This document shows, in pieces, positions 47,524 through 59,834 of a stretch of 64,000 nucleotides of DNA (position 1 is the stretch's first letter; every line of letters begins with the position of its first letter). The notes beneath the pieces were generated by a model. It was not told where the DNA came from. It did no database searches and worked only from the letters and a program-made list of their open reading frames with translations. Made by a program: the position numbers and the translations under genes. Where the stretch lies: sequence record NC_061418.1. The stretch is one strand, 5' to 3'.

Positions 47524-49566
47524 TTAAGCGGTATAAATGAATTGATACGGGGTCAGAAGCTGTGTGGCCGGTTTAGTGCCAATGTCGGTATCGAACAGGG
47601 CGATTTTCCCTACTCCGTTTGGAATGAACGAGAACGCCGAGTTATCCCCTTTACAACTCCAGTACTGAGCCGATGCAGCGGTCGTCGCATTCGCACCGGT
47701 GGTAAAGTGCGCCAGATTACTCAACGTGTTCGTCACGCTATTGGACTGGCAAGCGATATTCACCGAGAACGTTCCTTCACCGGAGTCTTTGACGTGAGAA
47801 CCGTCACAATGGCTGTATACGGAGTTCAGACGCAGGATTGTCCCGTACGCAGAGAGACCGGAGGCCGCAGAGGTATGGTTACTATCAAAACCGCAGTAGC
47901 TGACTGTTGCTCTATTCTCCACGATCCAATACTTACTGTTCATCGCAGGTAATACACGGTCACTGTTGTAACTGAATCCGCCACTGAAACCAAATTGTGC
48001 AACACAGTCTTGGTGTGCAACGTTATAACCGTAGCTTCCGAAGGATGGGCCCTTGAACGTCCACCCGAACCGACAGGCGTTCATGTACAGATACCCGTAG
48101 GTTCTCGGTGTGGTCATGTCTGCGATAAAGCCATTGTAGGAGAGATCAAAATTACATTTCTCCATGAACACGTTACCCGCATCGGCGACTGACCCTGAGA
48201 GCGTTTTTGCAATCAGGTAAACATTACTGTCTGGCTTGCGGCTATCGGTTAATCGAACGTAGACCCGATTATTGGTGTTGTCGATGTAATACGAGTGCGG
48301 AGTGTTCGCACAGTCAGCAATCGAGGTCTTAGCAGTCATTCTCCCGTACCCGGCATCGCTGTATACCGTTTTGTCTACCACGGCAGCAATGTCACTGATT
48401 TTACTGTACCAGGTGTTGGCATCGTACCCTGACCAATCAGTACTTTGACGGGTGGAGGTAAAGGTAGGGTTAACGTCACCGTAACCAATAATATCGACCG
48501 TACGTTGGCGAATAGTTTGTGTCCAGCCAGAGTCGGCATCGTAGTAAAGATCCGCGTAACCTTTTACGCGAATAACTCTGGCAGCAGGCAGTCGGTTTAT
48601 CGCACGACGGAAGGTTTTGAACGCAGTCGCTGCGGTCGAACCGTCATTGGTGTCGGAACCGTCTTTGACATCAACGAAGACCACTGTACCTGTACCGGCA
48701 CGTTTACTGGTGACGTCGAAACCCAGAGAGTAGGTCAATGTCCCCGCATTCAACGACGCTGTTAACCCTAACGTTTCAGGGATCACTGCAAGCTGAGACG
48801 GTAACATCGGCACTTTAGGAAGCAAGTTACCCGTGGCGTCGTAAGACGTTTCACCGTTGACTCCTAAGGTCTCCAGTAGACGACCATTGCGGAAGCGTCC
48901 TATCAACGTGTTCTTGCTGTTTGGGTGATAGTCGATTGCCGGGATAATATTCCCAGTAGGAGAAAGATAAAGCGCAGTTAACCCGGAACGTTGCGAAATA
49001 GTACGGCTGACGTCAACGATGTCTTTCCCAGCCAGTTTCCAGTGACCGCCTAAAAAGCTGAGGGTGTTATAGTCACTTCCCACGGTAAACTGTAGCGCAT
49101 TGAAATATTGGTAAACCGCCTCTTGTTTGCCGAGATAGATAGTTACGCTACCGGTGTACACGAGGTGATTATCTGCCACGCTGACTGTGATCTTTCTGAC
49201 GCCAGTGGCAATGTCATCTGGGCGATACGGGCCGTCTACGAGATCAGTGGTAGTTAGGGCGAGTTGGTATTTCTCGTTCAGGTACGGAATTAAATCAACG
49301 ATACGAGAAAGGGTATAGTCTTCCAGTTGACAGTAGGGTCGGGCCAATAGCGTTTTAAAGCTCAGGCGATTATACTGTAATGTTACACCGAGCGATTGCA
49401 GGGACGAGCCGTTAGTGACGTTAATCGTCGTATTCAAACCGTTAACAACGGTAGTGTTAACAGCGGGTGTACCTAACGAGATTGACGAAGTCGTGTACAT
49501 TGTCCCGTTTGCTTCGTTAATCAGGTCAACGGCAATCTGTTTTGGGGTCTGTTTTAAATCAACCAT
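47524..49566 (-). CDS. Virion structural protein / tail fibre with C-terminal beta-helix
   Basis: Start reassigned to MVDLKQ (GAGGG RBS); YNRLSF...LNEKYQLALTTTDL; FVDVKDGSDTNDGSTAATAFKTFRRAI. Confidence 0.75.
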   Translation of the reverse strand: MVDLKQTPKQIAVDLINEANGTMYTTSSISLGTPAVNTTVVNGLNTTINVTNGSSLQSLGVTLQYNRLSFKTLLARPYCQLEDYTLSRIVDLIPYLNEKYQLALTTTDLVDGPYRPDDIATGVRKITVSVADNHLVYTGSVTIYLGKQEAVYQYFNALQFTVGSDYNTLSFLGGHWKLAGKDIVDVSRTISQRSGLTALYLSPTGNIIPAIDYHPNSKNTLIGRFRNGRLLETLGVNGETSYDATGNLLPKVPMLPSQLAVIPETLGLTASLNAGTLTYSLGFDVTSKRAGTGTVVFVDVKDGSDTNDGSTAATAFKTFRRAINRLPAARVIRVKGYADLYYDADSGWTQTIRQRTVDIIGYGDVNPTFTSTRQSTDWSGYDANTWYSKISDIAAVVDKTVYSDAGYGRMTAKTSIADCANTPHSYYIDNTNNRVYVRLTDSRKPDSNVYLIAKTLSGSVADAGNVFMEKCNFDLSYNGFIADMTTPRTYGYLYMNACRFGWTFKGPSFGSYGYNVAHQDCVAQFGFSGGFSYNSDRVLPAMNSKYWIVENRATVSYCGFDSNHTSAASGLSAYGTILRLNSVYSHCDGSHVKDSGEGTFSVNIACQSNSVTNTLSNLAHFTTGANATTAASAQYWSCKGDNSAFSFIPNGVGKIALFDTDIGTKPATQLLTPYQFIYTA

Positions 49567-49607
49567 TTTCAATTCATCCCTCATTATACGGGGCGGTTAA
49601 AGTACGA

Positions 49608-49617
49608 GTCATAGAAA
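49608..49617 (-). promoter_or_regulatory. Candidate late promoter TTTCTATGAC
   Basis: Between terminator and structural gene; TATG core as in phiKZ late promoters. Confidence 0.55.
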
Positions 49618-49656
49618 GGTTTTGGGACAAAAAAGAAAAGCGCGAGAAGGAGACAA

Positions 49657-49688
49657 CAGGAGAAGAGAGCAGACGCTCTCTTCTCCTG
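49657..49688 (-). terminator. Intrinsic terminator
   Basis: 14-bp stem caggagaagagagc/gctctcttctcctg. Confidence 0.8.
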
Positions 49689-49692
49689 GGAA

Positions 49693-50100
49693 TTATTCAT
49701 CGTCTTCGAAGTCTTCCGGTACAGATTGGTAATCGTCATCGTCGTAGTCGTCCCAATCCTCTTCCTCGCTGTCGTCAAGTTCATCGATGATCTTGTTGTC
49801 AGCTTCTTCCATGAACCAGCCTTTCTCAGCCAGTGTAGCAGCAAAGACGTTGTTCCCTTCTTCGATCAGCGTTTCGGTCACCGCCCCTGAGTCATTCTCA
49901 GTAACGGCAACCACCGTGAGTTCTTCGCCGTCAGCGGTCTTATCGTTGACATCCGTTTTATAGAGTTCAAACCCTAACTGTTCGTTGACACTTTCTAATG
50001 TTTCAGAAAGGTCGAGTGGGTCAACCGGACGGCCGTCGTTGTCGATGACTTCGAAAGTCTCTTCGTCGGTACTGAATTTCAGGATAGTGCGATTTGTCAT
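49693..50100 (-). CDS. Highly acidic protein
   Basis: About one third D/E by hand count; tail DELDDSEEEDWDDYDDDDYQSVPEDFEDDE. Confidence 0.85.
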   Translation of the reverse strand: MTNRTILKFSTDEETFEVIDNDGRPVDPLDLSETLESVNEQLGFELYKTDVNDKTADGEELTVVAVTENDSGAVTETLIEEGNNVFAATLAEKGWFMEEADNKIIDELDDSEEEDWDDYDDDDYQSVPEDFEDDE

Positions 50101-50426
50101 TTCCAGTCCTCCTGGGTGCGTTTAATAAAGAGTGCGTCAACGACAGTCAGATCGACAGGGATCAGCTCAGTCGCCGCATGGGGTTGTATAAAGTAAAGCG
50201 TCAGAGTTGTGTCGTTGGTGAGTTTTCCAACCACGTTGTAAAGAACACCGTTGTACATTCCGGATGTGCCGGTTTTCAGATTGAGTGCAACAATGAGTTG
50301 TCGTCCCAGTAAATCGCAGTTGTTACCAGGGTAAGTGTCGCGGAGTTTAAAGAGTACTCGACCCACCTTTTCTTGCCATTCTTTCATTAACACATTGAGA
50401 ATCGTTTCTCTTGTAATAACCTGCAT
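50097..50426 (-). CDS. Hypothetical protein (start reassigned to MQVITR)
   Basis: AAGGA RBS before ATG at 50426; ATGA overlap with acidic gene. Confidence 0.7.
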   Translation of the reverse strand: MQVITRETILNVLMKEWQEKVGRVLFKLRDTYPGNNCDLLGRQLIVALNLKTGTSGMYNGVLYNVVGKLTNDTTLTLYFIQPHAATELIPVDLTVVDALFIKRTQEDWK

Positions 50427-50547
50427 CTTGTCTTCCTTATTGGTCGTTATCATAGAAAGTTTACTTAAAAATAGATTTGGGGTAGTCAAGAAAAACAGGC
50501 GGTATATTGCTATGTTAACACCTAAAATGAACAAGGCATAAGTAGCG

Positions 50548-50760
50548 ATGAACTATTCAATCATTCCCACCACAGCGCAAAAGATTGTTGAGATTACCCG
50601 CAGTAAAATTGACCCGAATGCGGTCACGCTCATTTTCGAAGACGGGGCAAACGAAACATTTCTGGATTGGTTTGTCCAGAAACATAAACCAGCAATCGGT
50701 CGTTTTCTGGCCAAAGACACCGACGGTTTCCTGCACGTAGTAGACACGATCGACGCTTAA
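50548..50760 (+). CDS. Small phage protein, only credible plus-strand gene
   Basis: Occupies a gap free of minus genes; followed by a bidirectional terminator; AQKIVEI...WFVQKHKPAIG...DG motif. Confidence 0.75.
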   Translation: MNYSIIPTTAQKIVEITRSKIDPNAVTLIFEDGANETFLDWFVQKHKPAIGRFLAKDTDGFLHVVDTIDA

Positions 50761-50768
50761 AAGAACAC

Positions 50769-50801
50769 AGAAAGGAAAGGGGTTAGTCCCCTTTCCTTTC
50801 T
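50769..50801. terminator. Bidirectional terminator between convergent genes
   Basis: 14-bp stem agaaaggaaagggg/cccctttcctttct. Confidence 0.8.
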
Positions 50802-51045
50802 AGTCTATATTGTTTTTCAGGATGTCTTCGGCAGGGTAGAAATGATCTTCTACGATTTTACCGAATTGATGGGCGCCAGTGAGTGCGTTTTCTACGGGGG
50901 TGATGTAAGCGGCTTTATTGTCCCACGGCGGGAGAAGCTCTGAGAGCAACAGTGCGGCTTCGTTTAATAAAGCTAGGTTCTCGTCAGGGACGAATGATAT
51001 TGTCTCTTGTAGGCTCTCTAAGAGCGCTATACGGGGAGTAAACAT
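50800..51045 (-). CDS. Hypothetical protein
   Basis: AAGGG RBS; ends at terminator. Confidence 0.7.
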   Translation of the reverse strand: MFTPRIALLESLQETISFVPDENLALLNEAALLLSELLPPWDNKAAYITPVENALTGAHQFGKIVEDHFYPAEDILKNNID

Positions 51046-51062
51046 AGTTGACCCTTAAAGGT

Positions 51063-51182
51063 GAAATAAGACAGGGACCGAAGTCCCTGAACTTATAAAT
51101 TAAAATGAATGTCTCGTTATTAACCGGCACTGTGAGAAACGGTTAAATAGGAGTAATCGGAGGGTGTCTTATTTCCTCTTCA
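51063..51182 (-). ncRNA. Candidate structured small RNA or attenuating leader
   Basis: Early promoter upstream; no ATG inside; 11-bp 5'/3' complementarity, internal 7-bp stem and cUUCGg terminator stem. Confidence 0.45.
51072..51089 (-). terminator. Terminator stem with cUUCGg loop
   Basis: cagggac-ttcg-gtccctg then tcttattt on minus strand. Confidence 0.75.
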
Positions 51183-51205
51183 CACTTGTAATATAGATGT
51201 GAAAA
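51179..51205 (-). promoter_or_regulatory. Phage early promoter 8
   Basis: TTTTCACATC-TATATTAC-AAGT-GTGAA (exact phiKZ TATATTAC core). Confidence 0.85.
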
Positions 51206-51215
51206 AGAATCGAGA

Positions 51216-52943
51216 TTAAGTAATTTTCATCCACCAAATATCATTAATAAAATTCCCATCGATATCGGTGGTGGTAGTATTAGATCCCGACCCTTTCAAA
51301 ACAGTACCTGGCATAGTTTTAATCTTTCTTGCACTTGCAACGGACACTGGTGGTTGAGATGGAATATAACCGATTTTAGGATCGGTAATATTAACATTGG
51401 TGCACGTTCCTGCTAATTGCACGGCGGCAGCGGCGGCTGTAATGTCAGCTGCTGACCATACTTGTGAAAAAGCAACAACGTTAGTTAAAACAGTGGCTGC
51501 TTTACTGTAATTGACCGTGTCTGTTATAGGTTTAAGAATATTTAAACCGTCATTATATCTGGCGTAATAGACCGAGTCCTGAATAACTAATCGAGGAACT
51601 TCACCCTGTAACAACGGGAAATTATTATTACTAGCGAGGTATTTACTGGTTCGAGAAACGGTGTCAATAAAGACGCAGTTCCTGACCACATTGTTGTAAT
51701 TAATGTTACCAGAACGAATGTTGGTGCAATAGTCGTAACCGGAAGAAGGATATGGTAATCGTTGAATACCGTCATTGAAAAAGAACGAAAACTCAACAAC
51801 ATTGTTACCTTGGCCATTCCTTCGATCATAGAACCATTGCGCCTGTGTATAAGTGCCGGAATAGGGGGCGTACGCCGCTCGTGCTCCACCTTGTACACTT
51901 GTAGAAGAATTGCCCATAAATAGAATCGAGGCGCCATTGTTGAAGCCAATGATATTTCTTGCCACCGAATCCCACGTACAGTAATCAAAATCAATGATTT
52001 CATTATCGGTAACCGAAGGGTGCATACCACCGCCGAAAATGTTTTCAATCATGATTCGATTACAACGCCATGTCCAAAACCCCGCATCGGCATATAGCGT
52101 TTCAGTGTTCTCTAACGCGTTATCCCATCGGTATTTTGAATACGTAATATTCCGCATGACTGACTGATATTTGTCCACAACGTAGGCGGAGTTTAAAGAC
52201 TCCACGCCAGCAAACTGACAGCCTCCTTTTGAGATTCCTGTCATCTCAATATTCTCTACTTTGACCCCGCGAGAATAATACGTCCCTTTAGAGTTGTCAG
52301 TAATATCATCTGCTTTCCAATGGTTCCCCACGATGTTAATGGATCTCGCTACATTGAAAAATGAAGAATTTCTGACACCAAAAACATTCGCCCTATTTGT
52401 GGCGGCACCATCTAAACGTATATTGACGGCGGAATCATAGTCTTTATGATTTCCGCTTCTGCCAATCGGATCGCTAATAAATTTACAATTATCAATCCAT
52501 ACGTCGACATCAGTTTCCACAGTTACCGGTGGCAATTCAAACCAAATAAAACAGCTACTGTTATTATCGACCGAAACAAGATTGTTTCGGGCATAAAACT
52601 CTATTCCGCTGACGGTAACGCTTTGTACCTTACGTGCGGTCAAATGCATTGCACGATAGCTATACCCATCGAGCGCAGTGGCAGCTTTAAAATAGTCTGT
52701 GTTAATCCATTTTGGTTTTGGTCCAGTCCCATAACTTGTAATATAAGACATGGTCCCCGTTGTGTTGTACAAAGAGGTTAAGCCAAAATTAACGTTCTCA
52801 TAAATAGTTGTCCCTGCTTTTAGTGCAATAGTACAAGGGTGACTGAAACCTTGTGCAATCAATGCAGAAAACGTTTTAAATGGTGAGTCTTTTGTCCCCG
52901 TACCGTTCACTGATACGGTAGGATCAATGTAATAATAGTTCAT
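51216..52943 (-). CDS. Right-handed beta-helix protein (pectate-lyase-like; putative depolymerase)
   Basis: YYIDPTVSVNGTGTKDSPFKT cap; periodic IDNCKF, VRNSSF, IENIF, VRNCVF rungs. Confidence 0.8.
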   Translation of the reverse strand: MNYYYIDPTVSVNGTGTKDSPFKTFSALIAQGFSHPCTIALKAGTTIYENVNFGLTSLYNTTGTMSYITSYGTGPKPKWINTDYFKAATALDGYSYRAMHLTARKVQSVTVSGIEFYARNNLVSVDNNSSCFIWFELPPVTVETDVDVWIDNCKFISDPIGRSGNHKDYDSAVNIRLDGAATNRANVFGVRNSSFFNVARSINIVGNHWKADDITDNSKGTYYSRGVKVENIEMTGISKGGCQFAGVESLNSAYVVDKYQSVMRNITYSKYRWDNALENTETLYADAGFWTWRCNRIMIENIFGGGMHPSVTDNEIIDFDYCTWDSVARNIIGFNNGASILFMGNSSTSVQGGARAAYAPYSGTYTQAQWFYDRRNGQGNNVVEFSFFFNDGIQRLPYPSSGYDYCTNIRSGNINYNNVVRNCVFIDTVSRTSKYLASNNNFPLLQGEVPRLVIQDSVYYARYNDGLNILKPITDTVNYSKAATVLTNVVAFSQVWSAADITAAAAAVQLAGTCTNVNITDPKIGYIPSQPPVSVASARKIKTMPGTVLKGSGSNTTTTDIDGNFINDIWWMKIT

Positions 52944-52952
52944 CTAAACCTC

Positions 52953-54776
52953 TTAATTTGCGAGTTTTACCAACACGTCTATCCAAACTGCCGGGCCCAG
53001 ATCTACTGGGGAGCTACTCAACGCTTCTGTTACCGTGATCGCGTTAGTTGTTGTATTCAGTGTGGCAGTAGTAAGGACTTGCCTAACGCTAAACGCAAAT
53101 GTATGTGCAGTTGTATCCGTTGCACCAATAACGTATCGATAACTGTTAGCATTATTTGGTATCTGAGGTAGCCTTATCTGCCAAGGCATATCTGTCGCAA
53201 GATCAGCACCTGTGATCGTGAAATTAAGACTCGGTATTGTGCATGTTAATGAATCAACACCACTTTCAAAATTGGTGGCGTAACAAAAAGAAGAAACGAA
53301 TTTCTTAAAGGGAGCGGCATTGATAACCGAATCAGCCGGGTGGTTGTAATGACAACGCAATACAGCATAACCCTCTGGTACGTCAAAACTCGAACCATCA
53401 TTGAGTAACACGCGACGATAGTTTGACCCTGTATAGGCGGTGTTCGCCCAAATAATCCCTGCAGGGGTCGAACCACTGAGCGACGTCAATTGTGACCCGC
53501 CCATGTATTTATTCCAATTCCATGTGATCAAGTTTGCATTTCCGGAGTTCACGCAAGTAGAACTCAAATAAGTGGAATGCGCCGGAGTTCTTAGGTAGAA
53601 ATTCACCGTTCCGGTTGTTGTATCTTGAACCAAACCAATAACCGGTTGGAGGGCGTTTTTTACATCGCTATTATCCAACATCTTACCCGAACCAATCCCT
53701 GTAAAACGAACGTACTTATTAATGTTGTATTGAGTAAACGCGGTAACGACATCTGGTAAATTGACATCGAGAACATATGTCAAAACATTGCTATTTGTCG
53801 CGTTCCCAATATTAATTAAGCAGGAGAAACGTGCGCCGATAAGATTGGATGGGTTTACAATAGTTGCGAAATTAATGAAGTTAGCATTAGCACTGTCTAC
53901 GGTGAAGTAGGTGTCGTAAGAATTGGCCAGACTCCGTCCAATAGAATCAAGCTGAGCTAATTCTCTGACAGCTGTGCCGTTCGCCCAACTCCAACGATAA
54001 CGCCCAGCGTCAGTGAAAGGGACTAACCCTGTTTGGAGCGGAGAAACAGTAAAGATTCTTGGGAGATTTGTGGTTTTATCATAACTCCACATGATCGCTG
54101 GGGAGGTTTCATCATCCGCTTGGCCGTCTACAGGGAATCGCGCAATGACGTCTTGATAAGGACCTCTCCAGTAGCCTGTGCCTTCAGCAAAAGGTACATG
54201 AATGTTTCTTGCAGTTCGGTGTCCGTCAACGGTAGCTGAGGTTTTCAGTCTTCCGCGGTTATCAATGAGAATGGTACCCAGATTTTTCTTTCCGCCGAAG
54301 TTAATGCCAGCTACCGCTTGAATATCTTCAGGGGCCGGGTTGACGTCGTATTGACCTTTTACGCTCATTTGATCTTCAACGGAAATATCGTCAGAAGCAG
54401 AGGGCCCGTTTCCGTCAGTTGTTCCTTTATTATCAATTTCGCCCTTAAATTCCGCTAACAAATTTTCAACGACGCTCAAAGCCTGATCAATTACCCCAAG
54501 ATCTCTCCATGGGCCAACGTTAAAACTTCCTGTTGTCGTTACCAAGTTTAAAGTTCCATCTTGGTTTCTGGTGAAACTTTGCAACGTTCCCGTAGCTGAA
54601 ACTGTTTCGAAACAGTTGTTTGTATTAAAATCAAAAAGCACGTTTACATTGGAAAGGTCGACATTTGTCTCGAGTACCGCTATTTGATTTGTTTCTAATC
54701 CCAGTAGAGTACAAAGGTTACGAAGAATGATCTCTTTTGTTGTACTTCCGTTGGGTTGGACTAAACGATTTAACAT
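52953..54776 (-). CDS. Tail fibre/tailspike with tailspike-type N-terminal head domain
   Basis: QPNGSTT..ILRNLCTLLGLE..IAVLETNVDLS resembles Ackermannviridae-type TSP N-termini. Confidence 0.75.
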   Translation of the reverse strand: MLNRLVQPNGSTTKEIILRNLCTLLGLETNQIAVLETNVDLSNVNVLFDFNTNNCFETVSATGTLQSFTRNQDGTLNLVTTTGSFNVGPWRDLGVIDQALSVVENLLAEFKGEIDNKGTTDGNGPSASDDISVEDQMSVKGQYDVNPAPEDIQAVAGINFGGKKNLGTILIDNRGRLKTSATVDGHRTARNIHVPFAEGTGYWRGPYQDVIARFPVDGQADDETSPAIMWSYDKTTNLPRIFTVSPLQTGLVPFTDAGRYRWSWANGTAVRELAQLDSIGRSLANSYDTYFTVDSANANFINFATIVNPSNLIGARFSCLINIGNATNSNVLTYVLDVNLPDVVTAFTQYNINKYVRFTGIGSGKMLDNSDVKNALQPVIGLVQDTTTGTVNFYLRTPAHSTYLSSTCVNSGNANLITWNWNKYMGGSQLTSLSGSTPAGIIWANTAYTGSNYRRVLLNDGSSFDVPEGYAVLRCHYNHPADSVINAAPFKKFVSSFCYATNFESGVDSLTCTIPSLNFTITGADLATDMPWQIRLPQIPNNANSYRYVIGATDTTAHTFAFSVRQVLTTATLNTTTNAITVTEALSSSPVDLGPAVWIDVLVKLAN

Positions 54777-59824: not shown

Positions 59825-59834
59825 GTCATAGAAA
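59825..59834 (-). promoter_or_regulatory. Candidate late promoter TTTCTATGAC
   Basis: Directly after terminator stem, 29 nt before tailspike ATG. Confidence 0.55.

Follow-up and report, generated by a model that had tools for sequence, protein, structure and literature searches.

Introduction

Between the genes gp089 and gp088 of Klebsiella phage KpLz-2_45 lies a 170-nt spacer (51046-51215) that carries, on the minus strand, an early promoter followed by a leader. Is a free-standing small RNA made from this spacer, does the leader switch the genes behind it, or do a promoter and a terminator simply happen to lie next to each other? The window analysed here is bases 1-64000 of the phage genome (NC_061418, Siatvirus, 296.7 kb). 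Positions are those of the window; record positions are those of the whole genome.

A 479-aa ORF of KpLz-2_45 (record positions 218903-220339) corresponds to the nuclear-shell protein according to the annotation of MJ359 (100% identical) and Centimanus (77%). Judged by its genes, KpLz-2_45 is a nucleus-forming, chimallin-encoding jumbo phage. In the sister phage phiKp24, the shell and the tubulin proteins are both encoded (10.1101/2021.03.02.433402).

Genetic setting of the unit

The features are listed in Table 1. gp089 is the final gene of the upstream tail-spike operon and its stop codon (51218-51216) abuts the early promoter. MJ359 and LPKP23 carry different tail-spike genes in place of gp089. 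DNA homology restarts at ~51226, about 10 nt before the tail-spike stop, which makes the promoter-leader unit the fixed right border of a swappable cassette. The layout is common to MJ359 and LPKP23 (Siatvirus-like) and to FBKp24 and Centimanus (Maaswegvirus): in these four relatives a tail-spike gene and a spacer of ~170 nt come before an 81-aa gene, and a convergent gene for 70 aa, two small genes and tail fibres follow.

The Shine-Dalgarno sequence of gp088 (AAGGG, 51056-51052) lies ~7 nt past the tail of the terminator T1 and its ATG ~17 nt past that tail. As only these ~17 nt, with no recognisable promoter, separate the tail from the ATG, gp088 can be transcribed only by read-through of T1. 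Its product belongs to no Pfam or PHROG family and matches only unnamed viral clusters in the Atlas. The protein is 59% identical in FBKp24; it has no similarity to the product of the Moabite gene in the equivalent position.

The motif TTTCTATGA, a candidate middle or late promoter (TATG-type) by its sequence and location, is absent ahead of gp088. It is found three times in the window, always on the minus strand (49609-49617, 50450-50458 and 59826-59834; 0.78 expected), and two of its copies are located 24-37 nt ahead of the start codons of gp084 and gp086. Since the terminator T2 follows gp088 and gp086-085 have their own TTTCTATGA-type motif, the promoter at 51195 can serve gp088 only.

Table 1. 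Coordinates of the early unit and its neighbours in the 64-kb window, with identities between KpLz-2_45 and FBKp24/Centimanus where these were calculated
Feature	Position	Strand	Identity	Basis
gp089, tail-spike-like, 575 aa	51216..52943	-		ORF list, annotation, full-length PHROG match
phiKZ-type early promoter: CTCGA, T-run, TATATTAC (51195-51188), GTGTGAA	51182..51217	-		motif family and published consensus
Early-promoter motif copies in the window	2215, 13356, 14795, 18679, 31317, 31877, 42932, 51195	-		weight-matrix scan
Predicted non-coding early RNA or leader, ~111-119 nt	51063..51181	-		inferred start to terminator U-tail
P1 hairpin, GAGG/CCUC, 11-nt loop AAAUAAGACAC (51174-51164)	51160..51178	-		RNAalifold
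P2 (CUC/GAG) enclosing P3 (UUAACCG/CGGUUAA)	51113..51153	-		fold, RNAalifold
A/U-rich variable linker, including AUAAG (51096-51092)	51090..51107	-		alignments; consensus fold
Intrinsic terminator T1, CAGGGAC-UUCG-GUCCCUG and tail UCUUAUUUC	51063..51089	-		terminator scan
gp088, 81 aa, no known family	50800..51045	-		ORF list, annotation
Strong bidirectional terminator T2, 15-pair stem, U-runs on both strands	50768..50802	.		terminator scan
Promoter and first ~73 transcribed bases	51212-51113		82-90%	50-nt windows
Upstream gene			26-40%	window identities
5' half of gp088			45-55%	window identities
Whole genome			~74%	blastn

An early promoter of the phiKZ type

The published consensus of phiKZ-type early promoters is TATATTAC with GTG downstream (PMC7058600 Table 2; PMC8244752). 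In KpLz-2_45, the TATATTAC at 51195-51188 is preceded by TTTTTCACATC and followed by AAGTGTGAAG. Copies of the motif in the window were collected by a regular-expression scan first and by a weight-matrix scan second. The promoter, which the initial annotation had numbered 8, is the eighth of exactly eight copies in the window according to the weight-matrix scan, and all eight are on the minus strand. The whole genome holds 28 copies (20 beyond the window), again all on the minus strand, with the consensus TC-N-AA, T-run, TATATCAC, TAKTGAA. Every one of the 28 is located 22-133 nt ahead of an ORF; the copy at record position 220418 precedes the nuclear-shell (chimallin) gene, and the copy at 51195 is the sole one inside the tail-fibre cluster.

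The family thus shares with phiKZ-type early promoters the TATATTAC box, a T-run or T-rich element upstream, GTG(AA) downstream, dozens of co-oriented copies ahead of genes and a copy before the chimallin gene. It differs from them by its family consensus, TATATCAC, and by an extra upstream box, TC-N-AA. By analogy, the KpLz early promoters would be used by the virion RNA polymerase, and the transcription start would be at ~51181, that is, a few bases past the box as in published phiKZ-type promoters. A reading of the site as a sigma-70 promoter was discarded: a consensus scan found no such site, and in the sister genera the box is TATATCAC, where the terminal T of a -10 hexamer is missing. 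The heptamer TCGTATG occurs 0 times in the 64-kb window, both strands included, against 7.65 expected.

A leader without an open reading frame

The leader behind the promoter at 51195 is the longest of the 28 (133 nt; median ~55 nt, typical range 22-95 nt). It is also one of only two in which a hairpin and a U-run are located ahead of the first ORF. The ORF-less stretch of ~120 nt described at the outset is real: AUG is absent between ~51181 and 51046. For the 170-nt spacer, the computed folding energy is -43.4 kcal/mol (z = -4.3 relative to shuffles).

Three candidates for coding sequence were examined and rejected. A 48-aa ORF with a GTG start (50984-51130) stops after 12 codons in its FBKp24 version, a 13-codon ORF on the plus strand loses its ATG, and the remaining reading frames of the leader are broken by a 1-nt indel. 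This indel and the premature stops in the versions of FBKp24 and Centimanus rule out a conserved ORF on either strand.

A search of Rfam 15 at E values up to 10 gave four matches at chance level in 49000-53000, none of them on the minus strand of 51046-51215, and ARAGORN found neither tRNA nor tmRNA in the leader region. Public runs listed as possible RNA held a few low-depth contigs or were probably DNA. A literature search retrieved neither a transcript study of these phage groups nor a description of this leader RNA. From its sequence, the unit probably makes a short early RNA.

Strong hairpins (z < -1.5) open 9 of the 28 predicted early transcripts of the genome, compared with 5 of 60 random controls; such starts include record positions 77136, 220418, 238944, 241447, 259900 and 262831 and window position 2215. 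The transcript at 241447 carries a 12-bp hairpin and then a U-run at ~+12, possibly a second attenuator or a very short RNA.

Terminators T1 and T2

A cUUCGg terminator stem at 51089-51072 with a U-rich tail had been read from the letters and was recovered by the terminator scan as well. T1 has the features of an intrinsic terminator: 5 of the 7 pairs of its stem are G-C, its loop is UUCG and the stem is followed by the tail UCUUAUUU. In FBKp24 the stem is GUGAGGAC/GUCCUCAC and its pairing is kept. Two pairs of the stem are changed on both sides (RNAalifold), and the other changes go via G-U. The homologous hairpins are annotated as terminators in the records of FBKp24 and Moabite; the terminators of Moabitevirus have yet other stems and loops. 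In the linker, AUAAG (51096-51092) can pair with the tail and lengthen the T1 stem, a pairing also seen in the RNAalifold consensus.

T1 is the first terminator past gp089 and for this reason ends the tail-spike operon. T2, which is located between the convergent genes gp088 and gp087, ends the early unit.

Hairpins P1, P2 and P3

The RNAalifold consensus consists of P1, P2, P3 and T1 extended by the AUAAG-tail pairing. P1 is the most conserved box, and its loop core, UAAGACA, is invariant in three genera. Moabitevirus forms the P1 stem from different letters (pair 4 is A-U there instead of G-C), and Maaswegvirus gains an extra U-G pair through changes on both sides. Across the three genera, 72.5% of the P1 cells pair, versus 40-54% in controls with slid partners. 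P1 is thermodynamically weak in KpLz-2_45 (z ~0) and is accordingly tentative.

P3 is the internal 7-bp stem of the initial annotation and pairs 51146-51140 with 51126-51120, around a loop that contains CACAGUG. A C-to-U change in FBKp24 leaves a U-G pair, tolerated only as RNA of the minus strand, and 6 of the 7 pairs can form in Moabitevirus. No full compensatory change was found in P3 within Siatvirus and Maaswegvirus; in these two genera, two-sided changes are confined to the terminator. As only three lineages are available, the covariation for P1-P3 is thin.

Conservation between Siatvirus and Maaswegvirus

The promoter and the first ~73 transcribed bases are conserved between genera (Table 1): these ~73 bases are 82-92% identical, and identity drops to 26-50% in windows that cover the flanks. 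The 18-nt linker before T1 is almost wholly different between neighbours that are conserved. A 1976-nt contig from wastewater has only a 99-nt core in common with KpLz-2_45 (51108-51206), with 9 substitutions and one deletion, between flanks that cannot be aligned; one of the substitutions changes loop position 3 from A to G. The same wastewater run contains a second relative, a KpLz-like contig covering 50646-51109. The substitution pattern points to purifying selection in the first ~73 bases of the transcript, with its centre at the 5' hairpin whose loop is AAAUAAGACAC. Since other early-promoter regions are 88-93% identical, coding sequence included, the leader is a clear island locally, not a unique one genome-wide.

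The 20 most conserved specified bases gave 0 matches in a metagenome scan, an IMG/VR search returned only known genomes and one coding false positive, and blastn of the phage collection matched only 13 known records.

Conserved loops and spacers beside a saturated linker in one transcript imply that the RNA, or its DNA, is read sequence-specifically by a partner. In one alternative the RNA has no function: an early promoter and the terminator of the tail-spike operon are adjacent, and the DNA is kept as a recombination anchor, where the swappable cassette ends, or as a protein-binding site. Tail-spike genes are exchanged up to ~51226 and homology restarts at the unit, T1 is the first terminator past gp089, and P3 is a perfect DNA palindrome in KpLz-2_45 (TTAACCG-N12-CGGTTAA), all of which suit this alternative. 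However, a recombination anchor leaves unexplained an identity of 82-92% across genera next to a saturated linker within 120 nt; P3 has U-G pairs in FBKp24 and Moabitevirus, and these changes, like those of the terminator, keep pairing only as minus-strand RNA; and promoters need no 73 conserved bases past the start. A unit with no RNA function is thus highly improbable. In the first 73 nt, loops and spacers are strongly constrained in their sequence, which speaks for a role of the RNA beyond bearing the terminator.

A third genus: Moabitevirus of Serratia

A covariance model (R1) was built from five sequences and run on five more distant chimallin-encoding phages. Most of its matches there reflect the shared terminator type only. 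Those in PhiEaH1 and PCH45 were rejected as homologues, being driven by the common GGGGAC-UUCG-GUCCCC terminator. Serratia phage PCH45 also has, in the spacer 109654-109823, a hairpin CCAGGA/UCCGGG with an identical 11-nt loop, AAAUAAGACAC; a hairpin UUUAACC...GGUCAA precedes it and a strong terminator follows it, with neither an adjacent early-type promoter nor clear synteny. By sequence, it could be a rearranged homologue or chance.

The match in Serratia phage Totoro scores 27.8 bits; the Moabitevirus loci score weakly overall (16-28 bits), and R1 does not align P2/P3 at these loci. The Totoro match is located in a 195-nt spacer after depolymerase-like genes and before a 68-aa ORF, and a UUCG terminator stands at its end. 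Totoro has an early-type promoter, TATATACC...GTGAA, and its transcript would begin with GAAUAAGGACAUAAGACACCC, that of KpLz-2_45 with GAAGAGGAAAUAAGACACCC. Moabite and 2050HW carry a Totoro-like unit with small differences and a different terminator loop. In the three phages a tail-spike gene comes first, then an early promoter, ~125 nt that contain the box AGGA-N-AUAAGACAC, a terminator and small ORFs. In Moabite, a tail-fibre gene precedes the unit and several small genes follow it, one of them on the opposite strand; the next tail fibre comes after these. The analogous promoter motif of Moabite occurs 17 times in forward and 0 times in reverse orientation, including copies before its unit and before its chimallin gene.

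The 15-nt alignment of the 5' box between KpLz-2_45 and Moabite has P ~5e-4 relative to shuffles, and when all early-promoter leaders of the two genomes are compared, the two boxes are each other's best match. The chimallins of the KpLz group and the Moabite group are only ~31-33% identical, and the small proteins encoded downstream are unrelated. Resting on the 15-nt box and on synteny, homology of the Moabitevirus and KpLz units is likely. The second-best leader match is located at 2154-2324 of Moabite, where an early promoter is directly followed by a UUCG-loop hairpin and then by ACUCCUAUUUUAC, which resembles ACUCCUAUUUAAC of the KpLz leader.

A conserved 5' box may also belong to an early sRNA acting in trans. 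The 5' loop and box (GGAAAUAAGACACCC) would then be a seed or a protein site directed at a target in the host or the phage; a 3' module of the Hfq type would consist of the A/U-rich linker, the terminator hairpin and the U-tail, and read-through into gp088 would be incidental. In architecture, the unit is like those sRNAs of enterobacteria whose seed lies at the 5' end. Promoter and terminator are its own, its 5' domain is strongly conserved, its linker varies, its terminator covaries, and the box is kept in three genera although the downstream gene of Moabite is non-homologous. Against this, an antisense search in the KpLz-2_45 and FBKp24 genomes gave no extended match to the leader RNA, which is single-copy, and when duplexes with start regions were ranked, the top 40 of one genome and the top 40 of the other had only 2 orthologous pairs in common, roughly as many as chance predicts. 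In addition, a small ORF lies within 17-25 nt of the terminator in all three genera, which fits a leader. A trans-acting role is rather unlikely on balance, without being far-fetched.

The 11-bp end pairing and the proposed switch

The 11-nt complementarity between the two ends of the transcript, from which the idea of a switch arose, is exact: GAAAUAAGACA (51175-51165) is the reverse complement of UGUCUUAUUUC (51073-51063). A perfect 11-bp match of the tail to the 85 nt upstream was obtained in 1 of 5000 dinucleotide shuffles (P ~2e-4). Paired with its own tail, the KpLz 5' box gives a duplex of -13.6 kcal/mol; with the tails of the 113 terminators predicted genome-wide it gives -6.4 +/- 2.0 kcal/mol. 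The helix is part of the minimum-energy fold of the 122-nt RNA in KpLz-2_45, LPKP23 and MJ359. The only other terminator of the genome with an 11-nt tail match is located at record positions ~226280-226330; its partner is a hairpin-flanking A-rich tract, of the ordinary A-tract/U-tract type.

In an attenuator, the end pairing and the alternatives offered by ACCCU would decide between termination and read-through; otherwise the ends would close a protected panhandle. Such a switch is favoured by the rarity of the KpLz complementarity and by the presence of the helix in the folds of all three Siatvirus versions. Conservation argues against it. The helix has 10 bp in MJ359 and ~6 bp in Maaswegvirus: six pairs (AAUAAG/CUUAUU) are invariant, Maaswegvirus has lost 4 and MJ359 one, and 0 are compensated. 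The changes of Maaswegvirus that break 4 of the 11 pairs are the same ones that keep the T1 stem paired. The energy of the duplex with the own tail is ordinary in FBKp24 (-6.7 kcal/mol, a value that 36 of 118 tails reach) and in Moabite (-7.4 kcal/mol, reached by 69 of 231 tails). The purine-rich 5' end always finds some match in the pyrimidine-rich tail, and the tail also has a proximal partner, AUAAG, of a kind common in terminators. Functional pairing of the 5' and 3' ends thus failed the covariation check that had been suggested for it.

The alternative pairing of ACCCU with the AGGGU of the gp088 Shine-Dalgarno region did not hold either. That region differs in FBKp24 and Centimanus (Maaswegvirus) and ACCCU is unchanged there, so that the pairing, lost in FBKp24, is not supported. 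Two mutually exclusive conserved helices, as expected of a riboswitch or attenuator, were not found, the candidate partners of the terminator arms amounting to only 4 bp; the conserved leader domain is constant while the terminator arms covary.

The U-tail of an intrinsic terminator is still within the RNA-DNA hybrid when termination is decided. The 11-bp helix therefore cannot act before release. A switch built on it is very improbable; in the folds, the helix is lineage-specific and may close the released RNA in Siatvirus phages.

Proposed function and known systems

The reading preferred here, to which a probability of about 0.6 is given, is a promoter-to-terminator leader unit of a nucleus-forming jumbo phage that would yield a short RNA and, by read-through, the mRNA of gp088. 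The virion RNA polymerase would start at ~51181 early in infection. Most transcripts would end at the UUCG-loop terminator T1 (~51063-51070), giving a structured non-coding RNA of 111-119 nt; the fraction that reads through T1 would be the only mRNA of gp088 and would end at T2. T1 would also terminate the late upstream tail-spike operon. Of the earlier alternative, a small RNA or an attenuator of the island downstream, what stands is the unit of promoter, leader and terminator, through its conserved core, the covariation of its terminator and its synteny in three genera; the switch does not stand, and the island is reduced to gp088.

Units of this kind are known from giant phages of Pseudomonas. 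In phiKZ, 34 of 42 terminators in 5'UTRs yield mainly a short RNA together with an mRNA made by read-through, as northern blots confirmed for examples (10.1101/2023.10.13.562163); 11 such 5'UTR sRNAs were found in 201phi2-1 (PMC11512511). Short RNAs of giant phages detected by ONT-cappable-seq and northern blot include the 71-nt T102/PHIKZ221 of phiKZ and the 141-nt TU237 (10.1101/2023.10.13.562163; PMC11512511). The KpLz unit has the same layout: in a chimallin-encoding phage, less than 250 nt separate a promoter from an intrinsic terminator, no conserved ORF lies between them, and a gene on the same strand directly follows; from the likely start to the tail the distance is ~118 nt. By this analogy, the KpLz unit would add an example to the 5'UTR short RNAs of phiKZ and 201phi2-1. 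It differs from them by its hosts (Klebsiella and, for the related units, Serratia instead of Pseudomonas), by the early class of its promoter inside a late tail-fibre cluster, and in that the KpLz RNA is a predicted one. R1 found nothing in 178000-200000 of phiKZ (gp174-gp185), and no likeness was seen to the gp181-gp182 region, which holds a conserved sRNA. Unlike sRNA005 of 201phi2-1, located in the 5'UTR of the gp182-family tail gene, the KpLz unit follows a tail-spike gene and precedes an unrelated 81-aa ORF; this comparison was made by location and through the phiKZ region.

Two other types of system are partly similar. Type I sRNAs embedded in 3'UTRs, such as DapZ and MicL, have their own promoter near the end of a gene and share a terminator with the mRNA. 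The KpLz unit is similar to these in that its promoter abuts the gp089 stop, the first operon terminator is shared, and a conserved 5' part is followed by a variable linker; it differs in combining a phage early promoter with a structural (late) operon and in having a gene directly after the terminator. Cis-acting antitermination RNAs of lambdoid phages (nut/boxB of lambda, put of HK022) are likewise conserved and structured, and they too precede early genes and are placed after an early promoter but before the first terminator. Unlike nut and put, to which it has no sequence or Rfam similarity, the KpLz leader is single-copy and would be read by a multisubunit polymerase of the phage.

Biological significance

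The short leader RNAs of phiKZ-like phages are abundant; none has a known function and few were shown to be conserved past the genus level. The comparison of three genera locates the constraint at the 5' hairpin loop and not at the end-to-end helix. One could go further and regard the unit as a regulatory RNA common to at least three genera of nucleus-forming phages of Enterobacterales, in which the near-invariant loop A-N-R-UAAGACA-C docks onto a conserved partner; this extension is speculative and on present grounds doubtful. Candidate partners would be a host mRNA, Hfq, the phage RNA polymerase (put-like, with read-through of T1) or a factor of RNA export or stability.

For annotation, the unit is useful as the fixed right-hand border of an exchangeable tail-spike cassette, and early expression is probable for gp088, a small gene that lies within the late tail-fibre cluster. 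The phages that carry the unit infect clinically relevant Klebsiella and Serratia, in which genetics exists. If the extended proposal is true, a regulatory RNA encoded within a late tail-fibre cluster would be at work during the opening minutes of infection.
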